Positions 37-52,199 of a DNA stretch of 64,000 bases are shown piece by piece; the stretch's first letter is position 1; every line of letters starts with the position of its first letter. Source of the stretch: Heteronotia binoei (taxonomy: Eukaryota); contig NC_083224.1 in the NCBI RefSeq assembly GCF_032191835.1, positions 51,460,001-51,524,000 of the forward strand. Direction: 5' to 3'. Below the pieces are notes generated by a model. It was not told where the DNA came from. It did not search any database and saw only the letters and a list, made by a program, of their open reading frames with translations. Made by a program: the position numbers and the translations under genes.

Positions 37-415
37 TTGCCCCCCCAGTCGGAAGAACGAGACAACACGGTGTGTGGGTTTAAAACAGGGCAACTTTATT
101 AAAACCAACAGCATGGGGCAACCTAACTGACCGGACCGGCGAAGGGTACTCCACAACCCTTCCCGGACCCGGTGGGCGAACCACCCCGCCCCCAGCAGCA
201 GCCGAAAGACTAGCTGCTGCCAGGCCGGCCTGGTCGGGTGTAACCTCCAAATGTCGCAGCCGCCCTTACCGGAACGGCTCGCTAAACGAGGTAACCCTGT
301 GGCGAGAAGGACAGCAGAGGGCCGTTTTAACCCAGCTGCCGTCCATCATCCGCCACTTCCCTTACGGGGAAAACCACGGGTGGTCACCAAAACAAACCTG
401 CCTTCAAATCCCGCC
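37..415 (-). repeat. Split direct repeat B2 (379 bp), partner B1 at 755-1133
   Basis: Exact match at offset 718 from ttgcccccccagtc to aaatcccgcc. Mismatches occur at 36/754 and 416/1134. Confidence 0.95.
95..100 (-). terminator. AATAAA polyadenylation signal in B2 (duplicated in B1 at 813-818)
   Basis: Sense AATAAA followed by the GU-rich stretch gtgttgtctcgttctt. The signal is retained in both solo copies (51474-51479, 49036-49041). Confidence 0.7.
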
Positions 416-456
416 CAAATAAAGTTACCTAACGAGAAGCCCAGCCTCAAGACAAC

Positions 457-557
457 AGTACAAGGTAGGCGAAAAACATCCCAACTCAGGCCAATCAGAT
501 GGGATGAAAAAATTCCTACCTGGCCCCGAAACAACGGCGACCGGAGGAGCCTGTACT
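457..557 (-). ncRNA. Structured cis-RNA element in the A2-B2 spacer, ENE-like (U-rich internal loop between two stems)
   Basis: Sense AGUACA...AGGUAGG-AAUUUUUU-CAUCCCA-loop-UGGGAUG-UUUUUCG-CCUACCU-UGUACU. The same 101-nt span is present at 48536-48636 and 51844-51944 with compensatory changes. Confidence 0.7.
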
Positions 558-578
558 ATTGCAGGGTGGGAGGGAGGG

Positions 579-756
579 CCGAAAACGGCCAGCGAAGTGC
601 GTGGCCGGGGGCGCGGTCTGGCTAAAAAGCCCCATAACCACGCCCCCAAAGCTTCCCCGGATGACGGAGCCGTTTGCCTCGCTCCATCCGGGGAGGCAAA
701 CTCGGCCCCCGCCCTAAAGCCAGCTGAAGCAGGCACGGGCGGGAAGGGGCCGGATT
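579..756 (-). repeat. Split direct repeat A2 (178 bp), partner A1 at 6187-6364
   Basis: Exact match at offset 5608 from ccgaaaacggcc to ggggccggatt. Confidence 0.95.
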
Positions 757-1133
757 GCCCCCCCAGTCGGAAGAACGAGACAACACGGTGTGTGGGTTTA
801 AAACAGGGCAACTTTATTAAAACCAACAGCATGGGGCAACCTAACTGACCGGACCGGCGAAGGGTACTCCACAACCCTTCCCGGACCCGGTGGGCGAACC
901 ACCCCGCCCCCAGCAGCAGCCGAAAGACTAGCTGCTGCCAGGCCGGCCTGGTCGGGTGTAACCTCCAAATGTCGCAGCCGCCCTTACCGGAACGGCTCGC
1001 TAAACGAGGTAACCCTGTGGCGAGAAGGACAGCAGAGGGCCGTTTTAACCCAGCTGCCGTCCATCATCCGCCACTTCCCTTACGGGGAAAACCACGGGTG
1101 GTCACCAAAACAAACCTGCCTTCAAATCCCGCC
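755..1133 (-). repeat. Split direct repeat B1 (379 bp)
   Basis: Identical to 37-415. The ORF track gives the same 55-aa translation at 251 and 969. Confidence 0.95.
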
Positions 1134-1154
1134 ACCACAATGCCAAGCCTCAGC

Positions 1155-1756
1155 TTAGGCACTTGTGCCCACCGGCAGGCCTAAAGCCAGCCGAAGCCCC
1201 AGCTGTAGGTCCCGAAGAAAGGCCCTGTTGCCAGCCGCGGACAGGTGGACGCCATCTGGTCGATACAGGTCCGCCATATAAGACCTAATGCCCGGGTGGG
1301 GAAGGTAAATACCAAGGCCCCCGGCGAGCGCCCTCCGCATCGCCCTGTTAGCCTTGCGCCGAGCCCTCTCGACGCCGGCCGGGTTCAAAGCCGACCTCCA
1401 CACCCGCCGTGGGAGGATGGCGGACCACACTATCAACACCTCGGGCCACCTGCTCCGCACCACCTGGAGGTCCTCGATCGCCTGGTGAGACAGGGCCCTC
1501 CCCTGCACCAGGCCCAGATCGTTGCCCCCAAGGTGAATCACCAGTATCTGAGGCGGGAGACCTTCCCCCTCCCGGAACAAAAGCGGCAAGAGGCCGTCCC
1601 AACGTAGGCCACGGCGCCCCTGCCATTCCAACACTGCCCGCTCGCTGAGGCCCAACTGAGAACCAAAGGGGGACCGCCGAGCAAAATGGGCAGCCCAGAA
1701 TATCATGCTGTGGCCGGCGATCAAGATCCTTGTCCTCTCGCCGCTCGCCACAGCAC
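1155..1756 (-). CDS. SGNH/GDSL-type hydrolase (esterase) ORF of the Ngaro element; no initiating ATG, probably a spliced exon
   Basis: Blocks GHS (I), HLGGND (III) and DGVH (V) are present. The ORF-track start at 1751 is GTG. Branch point, polypyrimidine tract and CAG end at 1757. Confidence 0.85.
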
Positions 1757-1799
1757 CTGAAACAAGAAAGGTAACAATGTGAGAAAAACAACCAACCCC

Positions 1800-2681
1800 T
1801 CAATGGGTAATGGGGCGAACATAGCCCTTGTAAGCCGTGGACCTCCACCGTCCCACCTTCTGAATCGCGGGCCCCGGGTAGCCCATGGCTGCTGCCGTTG
1901 ATGCCGCCCCAATGCGGAAGGAATGAGTCCCAAAATGGACTCCCCCGAGGCCAAGCCTATCCAGGGCCCGGCTGGTTATAGACCAAAACTGAAATTTGGT
2001 CAATGGGGACCCATCCTCGTGCCGAAATAGAGGCCCCGCATCATCGCCCCGAACAGCGATATAATCCCTGAAGGCCGCCACCGGGCAGATATCCGTGTCA
2101 TCACACCCACCCAGTGAGATGCTCGTACCACGCTGTTTTTGATCCGTCTTTGACCTGCGTATTGAAATGACCACACAGTCAGCCTGCATTTTTACGTCAC
2201 CCAACTGCAGGGCCCGCTGAGAGCGGTCCTGCCGGGAGCTGACCACCAGCTCGCTCACTCTGAGCGCCCCAAAAAATGCCATCATGGACGCTGCCTGAAA
2301 AAGGGTCGCCTCAAAATTGGAAAAACAAACTGCAGGCCAGGCTGACCTGAGGCCCTTCAAAACCGTAGGAGAAAAGGGTTGCCTGTTGTCGGGTCGCGGA
2401 CCTTGCTCCCGCGCCCAACCCTCCAGCATTTTCCTCAATCTAAAATCATCGGTGCGATCGGGTAAACCCCTACTTTTTGCATGAAAAGCGAGGGCGGCCA
2501 ACTTGGCCCTGATCGTTTTAACAACAAGACCCTTACCTCTCAAGTGAACACAAAACTGCATGAGGTGGGCCACCGGGACCGGCCACCGGTTGGCCAACCC
2601 CACCAGCTCCCTAAAGGACCGGAACTGGTGTACCGAAAGATCGTAGGCCTTCCGGGTAGAAGGCGCCAGTGCCAGCATCAT
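1800..2681 (-). CDS. Tyrosine recombinase (YR)
   Basis: Catalytic motifs ALRVSEL (R), RRSKTDQ (K), HSFRIGAA (HxxR) and GRWRSTAYKGY (W, Y). The N-terminal APSTRKAY helix domain is present. The first in-frame ATG, at 2681, overlaps the RT stop codon. Confidence 0.93.
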   Translation of the reverse strand: MMLALAPSTRKAYDLSVHQFRSFRELVGLANRWPVPVAHLMQFCVHLRGKGLVVKTIRAKLAALAFHAKSRGLPDRTDDFRLRKMLEGWAREQGPRPDNRQPFSPTVLKGLRSAWPAVCFSNFEATLFQAASMMAFFGALRVSELVVSSRQDRSQRALQLGDVKMQADCVVISIRRSKTDQKQRGTSISLGGCDDTDICPVAAFRDYIAVRGDDAGPLFRHEDGSPLTKFQFWSITSRALDRLGLGGVHFGTHSFRIGAASTAAAMGYPGPAIQKVGRWRSTAYKGYVRPITH

Positions 2682-4531
2682 TGCTCTGTTGGCCTCGAGT
2701 CTCCAAGCCGCCACATCTCTGGGGGCATCCGAGCCGGCAGGAGATCGGCCTCTGGTGCAAGAAGGCGGAAGCGCTCCATCTGCCGACGAGACAGAGCATC
2801 CGCCACCCCATTGCAAACTCCGGGCACATGCTTAGCACAAAACAAAACATTTAACCTTAAACAGCTTAACACAAAGGCCCTCACAAGGCGCATAACCGGG
2901 ACTGACTTGGAAGACAACGTGTTGATCACGTGTACCACAGCTAAATTGTCACACCAGAAGTGGACCACCCGGTTTGCCAAAGCAGGGCCCCATAACCTAA
3001 TTGCAACTACTATAGGAAAAAATTCCAAGAAAGTTAAATTCCTGCAGAGGCCGCTAGCAAGCCATTCGGTGGGCCACACCTCCGCACACCAGTGGCCCCG
3101 AAAGTAAACACCGAAGCCGACCGCCCCGGAGGCATCGGATGTGACTTGGAGTTCAGCTTCCAGTTTCAACTCCTCGCGCCAAAAGGACACCCCGTTGAAA
3201 TTGGCCAGAAAACGCTCCCAGACCTGCAAGTCAAGCCGCATGCCCTGAGTAACCCTCACTCGATGGTGGGGGCGGCGCAAACCCGACATAGCGTCGCAAA
3301 GGCGCCGCAAAAATGCTCTCCCCGGGGCGACCACCTTGCAGGCGAAGTTCAAGTGGCCCACAAGAGTCTGGAGCTCAAGGAGAGACAGCTTACGTTGGCC
3401 CTTGGCGGCGGCCAACATCTGCTTCAGCCTATTAATTTTGTCAGCAGGTAACCTGGAAGCCTGATCAACCGAATCCAACTCAATGCCCAAGAAGGTTAAT
3501 CTGGTCACCGGGCCTTCGGTCTTTTCAGGGGCAAGCGGTAGACCCAGCTCAGCCGCCAAGCCCTGGAAGGACTGGAGCAAGTGGGCGCATTGGCCCGTCC
3601 CTTGGCGGCCTACAAACAAAAAATCGTCCAAATAATGGACCGTAGAGGCGGAACCGGATCGTGCTCGCAAGGCCCATTCAATGAAAGTGCTAAAACGCTC
3701 AAAAGCTGAGCAGGAGATAGAACATCCCATTGGCAGGGCTCGATCCATATAAAACTTCCCCTCAAAGGTGAAACCCAGGAGCTCGAAGTCTTGCGGGTGT
3801 ACCGGCAAAAGGCGAAATGCTGACTTAATGTCGCATTTCGCCATTTCGGCCCCCGGGCCACAACTTCGCACGATCGCGACAGCCTGATCAAATGAGGTGT
3901 ATCTCACTGAACAGAGGGATTCAGGTATGGCGTCATTAACCGAGCCGCCCTTAGGATAGGAGAGGTGGTGAATCAACCGAAACTCCCCAGGTGCCTTCTT
4001 AGGCACTACCCCCAACGGGGATACCCTCAAATTGGGAACTGGGGGGCTGTCGAAAGGGCCTAAAACACGGCCCTCCTTGCATTCCTTCAGGATCTTTTCA
4101 CGAACCACCGTTTCCATACCTTTGACCGACTGCAAGTTCCTGGCCATACAGGGGCCCCTGGGACCCTGAAAAGGGATGCGGAAACCATAACAAAACCCAT
4201 CTAACAAATAAACTCGGTCGCGGGAGCGCGGGTAACCAACTAACAACTTCTTAAGGACCGTCACCTTGATGGGGCTGGGGCCCTTTTCCAACTGCTTGGG
4301 AGCTGCTATTACTCCCGGTCCGCTTGGCGCCGGCTCGGGGCTTTGTTTTGTTACATGAGACCAGGGAATGGGACCCGCCACACAGGGGGCACTCGTGCCT
4401 GTATTTACACGGCTTCCTGTTACAACCCCCTTGGGACGAGAAATCCCAACACACCAGCCGGGGTTGAACCGGCTGCCCCGCCGACGCGCGGGTACCAGAT
4501 GCGGATACATGCCTGTTAACGAGGTGGCCAC
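2678..4531 (-). CDS. Reverse transcriptase / RNase H
   Basis: RT motifs KCDIKSAFRLLP, LPMGCSISC and YLDDF. RNase H motifs TSDASG, LEFFPI, CDNLAVV and NGVADALSR. The frame opens at 4621, the first ATG is at 4510, and it lies +1 relative to gag. Confidence 0.95.
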   Translation of the reverse strand: MATSLTGMYPHLVPARRRGSRFNPGWCVGISRPKGVVTGSRVNTGTSAPCVAGPIPWSHVTKQSPEPAPSGPGVIAAPKQLEKGPSPIKVTVLKKLLVGYPRSRDRVYLLDGFCYGFRIPFQGPRGPCMARNLQSVKGMETVVREKILKECKEGRVLGPFDSPPVPNLRVSPLGVVPKKAPGEFRLIHHLSYPKGGSVNDAIPESLCSVRYTSFDQAVAIVRSCGPGAEMAKCDIKSAFRLLPVHPQDFELLGFTFEGKFYMDRALPMGCSISCSAFERFSTFIEWALRARSGSASTVHYLDDFLFVGRQGTGQCAHLLQSFQGLAAELGLPLAPEKTEGPVTRLTFLGIELDSVDQASRLPADKINRLKQMLAAAKGQRKLSLLELQTLVGHLNFACKVVAPGRAFLRRLCDAMSGLRRPHHRVRVTQGMRLDLQVWERFLANFNGVSFWREELKLEAELQVTSDASGAVGFGVYFRGHWCAEVWPTEWLASGLCRNLTFLEFFPIVVAIRLWGPALANRVVHFWCDNLAVVHVINTLSSKSVPVMRLVRAFVLSCLRLNVLFCAKHVPGVCNGVADALSRRQMERFRLLAPEADLLPARMPPEMWRLGDSRPTEQ

Positions 4532-5768
4532 TATCAGACCTATCCCCAGAGTTGGGCTTGGCCGGTGACATAAGCTGGAGCCACAACTGCTGGTGAATGT
4601 GGTCCCATGGGATGGTAGGGTTCAATGCCGCCCTCATCCGGAACTCCTCGTCATACTGCAACCATGCAGCGCCGGAGAAGTCCGTGTAGGCCTTAAAAAT
4701 TATATCCAGGTATTGAAAAAGAGGTGCGGCCCGTAAAGGCTGCGCCCGCGCGACAACCCCGGCATAGATTAAGAAACCGGGCAACCAATTGGACCAGTTA
4801 CGCTCAACCTTGCGGCGTTTGATCCTCTCTTTGTCCTTCTCGTCTAAATCTTCTTTTTCTTTCTTTTCTAACTCCCGATAGAGAAGGGCAAAGACATCAA
4901 CGTATTCACCCCGGAGAATTTTTTCCCGGGTGGCCGGCGTGAGGTGATCACCCAAAGGCATAGCGGTGTCACCAAAAGGGCGGCAATGGAAGGGGACTGA
5001 TCCCAACAAATTTGGTGGGCAGCCCCACCCCCCCCACTGAGGAACCGTCCAACCCGGTGCAGGGATGCTACCCCATTGAAAACCCCACGGCAAGGAACCC
5101 GAGGGGGGCGGTTGCCCACCGGAACCAAGAGGGGCTGAAGGAGTAGGCGTAGACCCTGCTCCGAGTGGAGGGGTCCAAGGCAAAATCTGTCCCTGACCCG
5201 AAGAGCCAGCTGCAGCTGCTGCGTTGAAAGCAAACATAGGACCAACAGAAGACCCCTGGCCAAGGTTGGCCAGAGGGAGTGCCGGGCTTGTCGGACCCCA
5301 GGGGTTCAAACCCCCCCACGGCCAAGAGCCAGGAACGCACGGGAGGCCTTGCTTACCGTCTGGCACCACACCTGCAGGAGCCCCAGCCGGGACGGCGCCA
5401 CCAACATCCTCCGGGCGAGCAGGCACTTCTGGATGATTACCTTCATCTGCATCCGAACTGTCGTCCTGAGGTTCTGGTCCCGCTCCACCTGATGGCCCAG
5501 GCAGGGCCGCCATCTCCTGCAAAGATGAGAGACGAGCCAGGACCTCCTGCTCGAAGGCCCTGGTGGACGTCCTAGCTGCCTTACGGCCCCGCCCAGGGAG
5601 GGATTGCACATCCACTCCATGGTGCCTTTCTAAAGCCTCAAGGCTGGCTACAATAGCCTGCCTAGTTTGGGCCTCCTGTTCAACTCCAGGGGGCCCACTG
5701 GGAATGGGCCTTTTCTGGCCAGCCTTTAAGGGCTGCTTGCCCTTAGATTTCCCTTGCCCCTTAGGCAT
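4251..5768 (-). CDS. Gag-like ORF1 (505 aa from MPKGQGK)
   Basis: Pro/Gly-rich middle and a helical YxxxFRxRAA core. C-terminal Cys/His cluster CWDF...CNRKPCKYRHECPLCGGSH, typical of DIRS/Ngaro Gag. The ORF-track extension to 6086 has no ATG. Confidence 0.85.
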   Translation of the reverse strand: MPKGQGKSKGKQPLKAGQKRPIPSGPPGVEQEAQTRQAIVASLEALERHHGVDVQSLPGRGRKAARTSTRAFEQEVLARLSSLQEMAALPGPSGGAGPEPQDDSSDADEGNHPEVPARPEDVGGAVPAGAPAGVVPDGKQGLPCVPGSWPWGGLNPWGPTSPALPLANLGQGSSVGPMFAFNAAAAAGSSGQGQILPWTPPLGAGSTPTPSAPLGSGGQPPPSGSLPWGFQWGSIPAPGWTVPQWGGWGCPPNLLGSVPFHCRPFGDTAMPLGDHLTPATREKILRGEYVDVFALLYRELEKKEKEDLDEKDKERIKRRKVERNWSNWLPGFLIYAGVVARAQPLRAAPLFQYLDIIFKAYTDFSGAAWLQYDEEFRMRAALNPTIPWDHIHQQLWLQLMSPAKPNSGDRSDSGHLVNRHVSASGTRASAGQPVQPRLVCWDFSSQGGCNRKPCKYRHECPLCGGSHSLVSCNKTKPRAGAKRTGSNSSSQAVGKGPQPHQGDGP

Positions 5769-6186
5769 AATGATTCCCAGGCACTGGCAAAAAGCCTCTA
5801 GCAGGACCCAGCAGCACCTGTGTACCAGGCTGATAATTGTAGAGAGGAAGAGAAACAAGCAACCCCGACCACCAGCCCCCAGAGGGAAGAGTCCTAGGCT
5901 CCAATTACACCCAAAACTCCCTGGAATGCAAGCTATAACGGCAGCAGACCAAAAACAGGAAGGGGTGGGTGGGTGGGGGAAAAACGAAACCTGGCGCGGC
6001 CGATAGCCGCGCGTGCGAAGCCCGCCCGTCAGCTGTTCAGCGGCGAAACGGGTCCCAATTGCGGCGAAGAAAAAAGCGGCCGTCACAGGGAAGCCCTCGT
6101 CGACTGCAGCGGCTCACACGCCAACCCGACGACGCTGCAAGGCCCAGCCGCGCCCCGACGGAGGTAAGCCGAACGCTGCTTCCCAC

Positions 6187-6364
6187 CCGAAAACGGCCAG
6201 CGAAGTGCGTGGCCGGGGGCGCGGTCTGGCTAAAAAGCCCCATAACCACGCCCCCAAAGCTTCCCCGGATGACGGAGCCGTTTGCCTCGCTCCATCCGGG
6301 GAGGCAAACTCGGCCCCCGCCCTAAAGCCAGCTGAAGCAGGCACGGGCGGGAAGGGGCCGGATT
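6187..6364 (-). promoter_or_regulatory. Split direct repeat A1; probable element promoter
   Basis: Identical to 579-756. The sense strand has GC/GT boxes (gggcggggg, gggggcgtgg) followed by a T/A patch (ctttttag; ttttataag in the 52 kb copy, ctatatc in the 48 kb copy). The promoter role is inferred. Confidence 0.6.
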
Positions 6365-6694: not shown

Positions 6695-7339
6695 TAGGGT
6701 TGCTAGGTCCAACTCAGAAAATATCTGGGGACTTTGGGGATAGAACCAGGAGACTTTCCCATTCCCTAAAATAAATAAAAATACAGCAGTGCAGTTCCCC
6801 TGAATACAGTCTTCATTTTCTTGTCCCCAGCAGCTAAACTTCCACTAAGTGAAAGTGAACACACACACTCTCACAAAGCAGGCAAAATAAACCCAGTTAG
6901 CAAGTGCTCACTTTTGTGATCTCACTGAGACAATTTACTCATGTTGCTGAATATAACAATCTGCTGTATTTCAATTTACTCATGTTGCTGAATATAACTA
7001 TCTGCTGTATTTCAGCCAATTTCGTCAGTCTAATAGGAAAATGAAAGAACAGCCTAGGGTGTGGAGTTTTCCTCCGAACAAACAGAGGGGCTGAGAGCAA
7101 CATGGCTCTGTCTGCTCACCGTATCCCACCCCTGCAGCTTTCCTGCTGAGATTTAAAGGCACACACGCATTCAGAAACACAAACAGTTACAAGCCTCTTC
7201 TAAACCAGCCAAGGTTTGAAGGCACATGGTGGCTGTTGGGGGTGAGACTCCCCCCCCCCCACAGGCCAGCTGGCTGGCAGCAGGGAGAAGCCTGAAAAAT
7301 TGGGGGATCTCCTTCCCGGACCTGAGAACTGGTAAGCAG
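6695..7339 (+). mobile_element. hAT-derived non-autonomous element (TAGGGTTGCCA TIR family), degenerate
   Basis: Left TIR tagggttgctaggtccaactc and an eroded right end. Colinear with the inverted copy at 46215-46842. Confidence 0.65.
6931..7012. repeat. 41-bp tandem duplication
   Basis: caatttactcatgttgctgaatataac(a/t)atctgctgtattt x2, with one mismatch. Confidence 0.9.
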
Positions 7340-48334: not shown

Positions 48335-49100
48335 AATTCGGCCCTGCCCTGGCCAAGCCACGCAGTGGCTTCAGGCTGCGGGCTCGCCCCCTTTGCCTCC
48401 CTGGAGGATGAAGGCTGCCCAGATTCCCGGAAATACAGGAACTGGAGGAGGGCGGAGCGTCGGGGCTATATCAGTCCCAGCCCCGCCCTCCATGGCACAG
48501 TTTTTGCACGGCTGTCAGCCCACCCACCCTTTAGTAGTACAGGCTCTGGCCGGTCGCCTTGTTGGAGGCCAGGTAAGAATTTTTTCACTTTCACTTGATT
48601 GTCTGTTGGTGGAGTGTTTTTCGCCTACCTTGTACTGCAATTAGGAGGTGGAAGGTTAGGAAAGTTGATAGGTTTAAAGTTTATTGGCCACTTGGCAGAA
48701 GGAGGATGGGGTTACTGTTATCGGTGACCACCCAGGGCTATGCACCACTTGGGTGCAGGCAATCTGCAGGAGCAGCAGATGGGCTATATGCCTCAGTGCC
48801 GCATAATGCAGATCATAATGATGGCTCCATCCAGGACCGGCTCTTTCGGGTGATCAAGGCTGAGAACAGGGTGAGGGCATTTGGCCCAGCCAGCCCAGCA
48901 TTAGCCACATTATGTTGGCTCATGCCGGGGGCAGGGTGGCTCGCCCATTTCTGGACAGGGAAGGGTCATGGGATGACCCTGGGGCTTGTCCAGCTTAGGT
49001 AGCCCTTGCCATACAAGATAAGTCACAGTTATGTTAATAAAGTGGCCCGTTTACCCATATACATGTGTCAGCCTCTTTATTTCGACTGGGGGGGGGGGAA
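48335..49100 (+). mobile_element. Solo Ngaro A-spacer-B unit (766 bp), highly diverged
   Basis: Starts aattcggccc and ends gactggg...gaa. Conserved spacer at 48536-48636 and AATAAA at 49036. Confidence 0.85.
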
Positions 49101-51414: not shown

Positions 51415-52144
51415 TTGCCCCCCCACTCAGAAGAACGAGACAACACGGTATATTGGGTAATAAACAGGGCAACTTTATTGAACAAGAACAGCCTGGGGCA
51501 AACTAACTACTGCCGGACAGGCCAAGGGAAACACCCCAGACCCTTCCCTGTCCGGAAGGGCGAGCCACCCAGCCCCCAACAGCAGCCCGTTAAACCGGCT
51601 GCTGCCAGGCTGGCGCAGGCAGGGTATACCCCCAAATGGCACTGCCGCCCACCCAGGAACGGCCTGCCATAGGAGGGAACCCTATAGCGGGCAAGACAGC
51701 AGACAGCTGTACAGCCCCGCTGCCATCCGATCCCACTACTTCCCTTAAAACCGGGAAAACCATTGGTGCACACTGAAAACCTGGAAACCTAGTTAAACTC
51801 CTGCCAATAAAGCTACCAAACCTAACCCAACCTTAAGGCAAACAGTACAAGGTAGGCGAAAAACATCCTAACCATGGCCAATCAGTTAGGATGAAAAAAT
51901 TCCTACCTGGCCCCGTAAACTCGGCGACCGGAGAAGCATGTACTATTGCAGGGTGGGAGGGTGGGCCAAAATCACCAGCGAAGTGCGTGGCTCTGGGCAT
52001 GGCTGGGCTTATAAAAGCCCCCAAACCACGCCCGCAACGTCCCCGGATGGAAGAGGACCATTTGCCTCGGCTCCATCCGGGGAGGCAAACGCGGCCCCCG
52101 CCCTATGCCGCCGGACGTCGGTGCGTGCGGGAAGGGGCCGGATT
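51415..52144 (-). mobile_element. Solo Ngaro A-spacer-B unit (730 bp), moderately diverged
   Basis: Starts ttgcccccccc..gaagaacgagacaacacgg and ends gggaaggggccggatt. Colinear with 37-756. Confidence 0.92.
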
Positions 52145-52199
52145 ATGCACAGAATTGCTACTGGAAAAACACAAATCCTGCTGTGTTGATCCCTGTGTT

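Follow-up and report, generated by a model that had tools for sequence, protein, structure and literature searches.

The locus analysed here raises the question of what a short folded segment in the 3′ non-coding part of a retrotransposon may be for. The DNA under study (hereafter the window, a stretch of 64,000 nt from the gecko Heteronotia binoei) has near its start a complete retrotransposon in minus orientation, and a first reading made from the sequence only had proposed that the 3′ spacer of this retrotransposon encodes an RNA resembling the ENE. An ENE is defined by two U tracts which face each other across an internal loop, set between a stem and a stem-loop and flanked by G-C pairs (PMC7583470), and it holds poly(A) in a U.A-U triple helix. 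It has to be asked whether the proposed structure is real, whether it belongs to the RNA of the element or to its DNA, and whether the poly(A) tail is its likely partner.

The host element has four ORFs between its repeats A1 and B1, the first being without a Pfam match and the remaining three possessing RVT_1, Phage_integrase (tyrosine recombinase) and GDSL/SGNH hydrolase domains. Its order is A1-ORFs-B1-A2-B2, with a reverse transcriptase and a tyrosine recombinase, no methyltransferase and the optional SGNH/GDSL hydrolase ORF, which is the same make-up as in the published description of Ngaro elements (PMC9210276). Repeats and domains thus agree with the assignment of the host to Ngaro in the sequence-only reading, which had also placed the fold in the 3′ spacer; copy 1 does lie inside this spacer (X, between A2 and B2) and outside both repeats. 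The spacer itself is an addition to the Ngaro plan. The coordinates of the element and of the structure are given in Table 1. Copies 2 and 3 lie in solo A-X-B units, a form without ORFs which accounts for 17 of the 60 loci of this genome (L001-L060); these units are probably the analogue of solo LTRs, produced by recombination between A1 and A2.

Table 1. Positions in the window of the Ngaro element, its repeats and signals, and the three copies of the 101-nt structure (positions within the structure refer to copy 1).
Feature	Position	Strand	Remarks
Full-length Ngaro retrotransposon	37..6364	(-)	Split direct repeats and ORF domains
Repeat A1	6364..6187	(-)	100% identical to A2
Repeat B1	about 1130..755	(-)	100% identical to B2
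Repeat A2	756..579	(-)	100% identical to A1
Spacer X, unique, 166 nt, between A2 and B2	578..413	(-)	
Repeat B2	412..37	(-)	100% identical to B1
B1 poly(A) signal AAUAAA, identical	818..813	(-)	Upstream of the structure
Copy 1 of the structure, three-way junction, in spacer X	457..557	(-)	Minimum-energy and centroid fold; covariance model 123.8 bits
Outer stem P1, 5′ strand AGUACA	552..557	(-)	Pairs with 462..457; 5/6 pairs compensatory across species
Side hairpin P2, GGUCGCC...GGGGCC	522..542	(-)	3/7 pairs compensatory; U.G pair in 31/32 sequences
Lower stem of ENE-like arm, 5′ strand AGGUAGG	515..521	(-)	Pairs with 469..463; 4/7 pairs compensatory, 99.6% of cells paired
Internal loop, 5′ side AAUUUUUU, AAU6 (U6 at 512..507)	507..514	(-)	U5-U7 in 32/32 distinct sequences
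Upper stem CAUCCCA/UGGGAUG (506..500 with 483..477) and apical loop	477..506	(-)	7/7 stem pairs compensatory
Apical loop, 16 nt, carrying CUGAUUGGCC	499..484	(-)	AUUGGC in 30/32 sequences
Internal loop, 3′ side UUUUUCG (U5 at 476..472)	470..476	(-)	U5-U6 in 31/32 sequences; U4 in the Lacerta copy
Lower stem, 3′ strand CCUACCU	463..469	(-)	Covariation
Outer stem P1, 3′ strand UGUACU	457..462	(-)	Covariation
GGUAACUUUAUU, complementary to the B poly(A) signal region	418..429	(-)	Predicted helix in best fold of 600..70
B2 poly(A) signal AAUAAA (100..95) and GUUGCC	89..100	(-)	357 nt downstream of copy 1
Copy 2, in solo A-X-B unit (about 52150..51420)	51844..51944	(-)	123.7 bits
Copy 3, in diverged solo A-X-B unit (about 48380..49090)	48536..48636	(+)	99.4 bits; one A.C mismatch in lower stem

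A covariance model was built from the three window copies, and a search of the window with this model returned those three copies only. All are exactly 101 nt long and were found exactly where the sequence-only reading had put them, and the U6/U5 loops and the side-arm motif CCGGUCGCC, which it had described as invariant, are identical in the three. The fold it had drawn, a three-way junction, is both the minimum-energy and the centroid fold of copies 1 and 2 (-37.4 kcal/mol, z -3.2, and -36.6 kcal/mol, z -3.9, respectively, with 0 of 200 shuffles as good). The best fold of copy 3 taken by itself differs from the junction (z -1.5), this copy being tied to the structure by its fit to the model. 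Folding of 531 nt of context retained the structure. A scanner for the pattern stem/U5+/hairpin/U5+/stem, run over both strands of the 64 kb, gave the Ngaro elements scores of 10-16, as against 6.5-7.5 for three other matches. A chance origin of the structure is excluded.

Relatives of the recombinase ORF are best in geckos (Heteronotia 74%, Eublepharis about 60%), followed by anoles, agamids, cordylids, skinks, lacertids and snakes and then by amphibians, and the DNA around these relatives was scanned with the covariance model. Each complete element had a single match to the model, the species being Eublepharis macularius (leopard gecko), Anolis sagrei, Pogona vitticeps, Hemicordylus capensis, Erythrolamprus reginae (a snake), Tiliqua scincoides and Lacerta agilis, and the match always fell within the unique spacer that separates A2 from B2. 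In the four species with mapped repeats the structure starts 22-25 nt past the end of A2 and finishes 40-90 nt before B2. Since it is matched in these seven further squamates, the structure is general in squamate Ngaro elements. The Ngaro elements at two frog loci, Eleutherodactylus and Ascaphus, gave no model match and no scanner match of at least 10. The Ascaphus copy (L067), as well as one Hemicordylus copy (L064), has an A1-ORFs-B form ending after a single B, and the Ascaphus locus could not carry the structure because it is without the A2-X-B2 part. The Ngaro element of Eleutherodactylus coqui (L066, 3232-4824 and 10872-11494) has tandem repeats of 321-324 nt at both ends and is not of the simple A/B form. 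Among the other lizards, there are also NCBI gene models (L062, L063, L065) in which an upstream exon is joined to the GDSL hydrolase ORF.

Covariation had been reported earlier from the three window copies, with a larger alignment suggested as a check, and it proves far stronger when other species are included. For ten sequences from eight species, fitted to the model, 96.7% of the cells are paired, compared to 40-52% in controls with slid partners, and 19 of the 27 pairs show compensatory changes, a level reached by 0 of 500 shuffles. An alignment of 32 distinct sequences fitted in the same way, which includes diverged subfamilies of this genome, has 98.4% of its cells paired (37-50% in the slid-partner controls), again with compensatory changes at 19 of 27 pairs and with 0 of 500 shuffles doing as well. 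As fitting to a model biases an alignment in its favour, MAFFT and RNAalifold were also run without any structure being supplied, and this structure-blind approach recovered three of the four helices, namely the side arm, the lower stem and the upper stem, with 13 of 20 pairs compensatory. As regards the list of covarying pairs originally given for the upper stem, the covariation stands, while the exact pairs of copy 3 hinge on whether a single C is taken as bulged.

The upper stem is wholly different in sequence between species (CAUCCCA, CUCCAUUCC, CCCCCC, GGGUCGUG, GCAGUUC and CCAUCAG being examples), and despite this turnover of the stem the U tracts stay at U5-7 and U4-6 in every sequence. 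Between subfamilies of this genome, spacer X is consistently more conserved than A, B and the coding sequence of ORF4, examples being 90% against 82-85% for the others and 85% against 75-79%. The ENE-like arm was aligned by blastn in six of seven between-species comparisons, and no other non-coding block could be aligned so widely. Beyond it, the alignments covered pieces of ORF4, the 65 nt at the end of B (two species) and a stretch across the B1/A2 junction (Eublepharis alone). The paired cells include 59 G.U and 2 A.C, the sense strand being 98.4% paired and the antisense strand 91.8%. This imbalance indicates a structure of the sense-strand RNA (or of a sense single strand) and not a double-stranded DNA site, and it upholds the previous remark that the wobbles are valid on the sense strand only. 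On the evidence of the aligned sequences, compensatory mutations have preserved the structure in geckos, in other lizards and in one snake, and as an RNA structure it is established as far as comparative analysis can do so.

The long arm has the ENE-type architecture claimed for it, with opposed tracts of U5-7 and U4-6 between covarying stems. The upper closing pair of the internal loop is C-G in 29 of 32 sequences. Of the two loop-proximal pairs in the lower stem, one is G-C in all 32 sequences and the other in 31, the exception being window copy 3 with A.C. Unpaired AA and CG (2 nt per strand) lie between the U tracts and the G-C pairs of the lower stem. The ENE-like arm is one arm of the three-way junction and stands alongside a conserved side hairpin and a conserved apical loop.

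With the single-domain ENEs known from KSHV PAN RNA and from other RNAs of viruses and transposons (Conrad and Steitz, 2005; Mitton-Fry, 2010; Tycowski, 2012, 2016; reviewed in PMC7583470), the Ngaro element has in common the succession of stem, opposed U5+ tracts and stem-loop, the presence of G-C pairs in the flanking stems, the place in the 3′ non-coding part of an RNA which would be polyadenylated and a putative stack limited by tract length to about five or six triples. It differs from them in its three-way junction, its conserved side hairpin and its 2 unpaired nt per strand, and also in its distance of 328-476 nt from the AAUAAA, its squamate tyrosine-recombinase host and the putative nature of its ENE function. 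The structure is a new and well-supported structured RNA and probably a new member of the ENE class, for which both the host element and the clade would be new and the context a variant one. The transposon ENEs of Tycowski's 2016 work reportedly lie close to the tail and come from non-metazoan species and one fish.

Predicted ENEs have been listed for viruses, for MALAT1/MEN-beta, for plant, fungal and slime mould transposons and for one fish (stickleback) retroelement (PMC7583470). A search of the literature found no report of an ENE or triple helix in Ngaro/DIRS elements, which accords with what the sequence-only reading had supposed, and likewise none of ENEs in tyrosine-recombinase retrotransposons or in amniote transposons. 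Its further supposition that no ENE was known from reptiles holds for the poly(A)-type ENEs of transposons and fails for the MALAT1 type, dispersed MALAT1-like triple-helix loci being present in anole lizards and fish according to PMC10869381 (citing Zhang, 2017). In Rfam 15, no family matched at threshold in positions 300..800, or at the gathering threshold in the whole window or seven foreign loci, and no ENE-type family matched 300..800 at E-values up to 10, the coverage of ENEs by Rfam being uncertain. The ENE-like Ngaro motif is an RNA motif missing from Rfam.

The closest precedent is found in the Arabidopsis element Copia93/Evade, in which an ENE validated by experiment lies downstream of the last ORF, in the spacer leading up to the 3′ terminal repeat, where it protects the genomic RNA from deadenylation and raises mobility, and the G-C pairs immediately adjacent to its U tracts are essential (PMC12501189). 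The Evade and the Ngaro structures are alike in their placing in such a spacer, and as this spacer is unusually long, both lie hundreds of nt from the poly(A) site. However, the Evade ENE has four U-rich tracts (double-domain type) and belongs to a plant LTR element with a DDE integrase, whereas the Ngaro structure has one U-rich loop. [quoted passage not shown] A MALAT1-like module was rejected as a candidate, there being no A run of at least 5 nt shared across species within 700 nt downstream, no tRNA-like fold and no Rfam match.

An AAUAAA is kept near the end of B in all species, and in the ten sequences it lies 328-476 nt downstream of the structure; for copy 1, the distance of about 360 nt given by the sequence-only reading is borne out by measurement (Table 1). 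The AAUAAA of B1 precedes the structure, which is thus present only in RNA that continues past B1. The Ngaro element is A-poor (17% A) with one A6 run in 6.3 kb, and no A-rich tract lies downstream of the structure, so that the poly(A) tail is the sole A-rich partner available. Among RNA data, one metatranscriptome contained 5% of the sampled words and a second search found nothing; the matches were short contigs 85-95% alike, some of them over 424..552, and gave no sign of transcription or of RNA ends.

The reading towards which we lean, with some reserve, is that the 101-nt Ngaro RNA is a cis-acting ENE into whose U loop the tail folds back, stabilising the full-length RNA. The segment would then be a cis-acting structured RNA of the squamate Ngaro spacer, carried only by transcripts which run past the B1 signal and end at the B2 signal. 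Its long arm would serve as a single-domain ENE, the lower stem with its two terminal G-C pairs being followed by the U-lined loop and the upper stem-loop. The poly(A) tail, added about 20 nt after the AAUAAA of B2, would fold back into the U-rich loop and form up to about five U.A-U triples with it. These triples would hide the 3′ end from deadenylases and exonucleases, with more full-length, replication-competent RNA as the outcome. Poly(A) clamping and RNA stabilisation are accordingly given here as putative activities of the ENE-like arm.

There may also be a means of bringing the tail and the arm together. In the best fold of 600..70, the 12-nt segment GGUAACUUUAUU (429..418), which directly follows the junction on its 3′ side and precedes B2, pairs with AAUAAAGUUGCC (100..89), closing the whole B2 domain, and a similar long-range helix with differing sequences is present in the best fold of six of the ten sequences (two window copies, Eublepharis, Pogona, Tiliqua and Lacerta), where it is predicted to bring the AAUAAA within about 30-50 nt. 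Such a bridging helix may place the poly(A) signal near the ENE arm, and in doing so it would fold the roughly 330-nt B2 domain aside and leave the tail next to the arm. When random windows taken from these elements serve as the control, the duplex energies stand out in no more than about half of the cases, and in half of the sequences the helix is only marginally above chance; the predicted helix should be taken as a lead and not as a result. The B1 signal (818..807) could also pair with the 418-429 segment.

It can be envisaged, though we consider this doubtful, that the ENE in its three-way junction and the anti-poly(A)-signal segment make up a two-part 3′ module which zips the terminal repeat and lands the tail on the ENE, with only read-through RNA being protected. 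If true, this arrangement would mean a selective stabilising of replication-competent genomic RNA over shorter mRNA, and might help to explain the very large expansion of Ngaro in this gecko genome.

Some 50 nt from the end of repeat A (579-756, minus) there are a GC-box-like motif, GGGCGGGGG, and TATA-like motifs, copy 1 having TTTTTAG, copy 2 TTTATAAG and copy 3 CTATATC. A TTTATT 3′ of the structure was tried as a TATA box and is better read as the complement of AAUAAA. To judge from the motifs, transcription of Ngaro probably starts near the end of repeat A (the A/X and A/5′UTR boundary); if so, A2 and the solo units could also start a short A'-X-B RNA.

Sequence conservation in the side hairpin and the apical loop goes beyond the needs of an ENE, which points to additional or other ligands. 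It is possible, if rather unlikely, that the three-way junction serves for the recognition of the genomic RNA by a protein and is not a poly(A) clamp, with the U-rich loop, the side hairpin and the apical loop as contact surfaces, and with Gag packaging, recruitment of the reverse transcriptase to the 3′ region or nuclear export of the unspliced RNA as its role. In simple retroviruses, constitutive transport elements export unspliced RNA from the same 3′ position. These elements and the retroviral packaging signals are, like the Ngaro structure, conserved structured RNAs placed after the last gene and ahead of the 3′ repeat, and they act on unspliced genomic RNA, as the Ngaro structure would; they differ in having loop sequences of their own and no paired U tracts, and neither in sequence nor by the model is there a match to the Ngaro element. 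A protein signal would fit well with the side hairpin and its near-invariant U.G pair and with the apical AUUGGC, both conserved and both unneeded for binding a tail, and also with the distance of the structure from the poly(A) site. Such a signal would find its place in the priming and RNA recognition of the DIRS order, which are undescribed (PMC7192593). It would leave unaccounted for, however, the presence of two opposed and near-invariant U5+ tracts, which are the signature of an ENE and would not both be needed by a generic site, and in Anolis sagrei and the snake it is the apical-loop motif that is absent while the U-rich loop is kept. Protein recognition and tail binding are compatible and may coexist.

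Conservation at the level of the DNA, either as a promoter/enhancer module or as a binding or recombination site of the tyrosine recombinase, is very unlikely. The apical loop (484-499, minus) reads CUGAUUGGC[C/U], the same loop being present in L061, L063, L065, L069 and L070, and as DNA this is CTGATTGGC[C/T], which we take to be an inverted CCAAT or NF-Y-type box. A 10-nt match to the consensus of the CCAAT box is kept in 30 of 32 sequences, recombinase sites typically contain nested inverted repeats, and the adjoining repeat A has its GC-box-like and TATA-like motifs; yet A. sagrei and the snake keep the fold without having the CCAAT motif. The excess of G.U over A.C pairs is sensible only for a sense single-strand fold, and as the stems change wholly between species with complementarity kept, there are no fixed half-sites for a protein to bind, the half-sites of recombinases moreover lying 6-8 bp apart and not 45-90. 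Finally, a poly(A) tail which snaps back on a U tract and self-primes the minus-strand cDNA is barely credible and was rejected, for even if the primer of the DIRS order is undescribed (PMC7192593) and the tail could anneal to a U tract close to the 3′ region, cDNA begun at the U tracts would in each replication cycle lose the structure's 3′ half together with the remainder of X, with no restoring since X is single per element, but X is inherited intact in all copies.

With the ENE-like arm as the preferred reading, a testable hypothesis is available for the stability of Ngaro genomic RNA, in a group whose cis-acting RNA signals, the primer included, are essentially undescribed (PMC7192593). 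If confirmed, it would add the amniotes and a third major class of retroelements to the groups in which ENE-type tail protection arose or was acquired. The covariation-supported motif also marks a large and recently active repeat family of squamate genomes.

Some features of the Ngaro family in this genome may be added. Four copies on different contigs are 100% identical across the 1.5 kb compared, and at first look there are more than 12,000 recombinase candidates, most of the scored ones with open frames; the family looks to be very recently active and massively expanded in this gecko. Protein searches for divergent Ngaro lineages in the same genome gave only one large clade. Just upstream of the 5′ end of the window element, a 41-nt unit is present in two tandem copies (6931-7012, 98% identical). 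The other end of the element (37-50) has a G run followed by CAA, GGGGGGGCAA, and a run of at least six G lies 411-471 nt past the structure in six of the ten copies, namely the three of the window and those of Eublepharis, Pogona and Tiliqua; the terminal G run and CAA may be part of the recombination junction.
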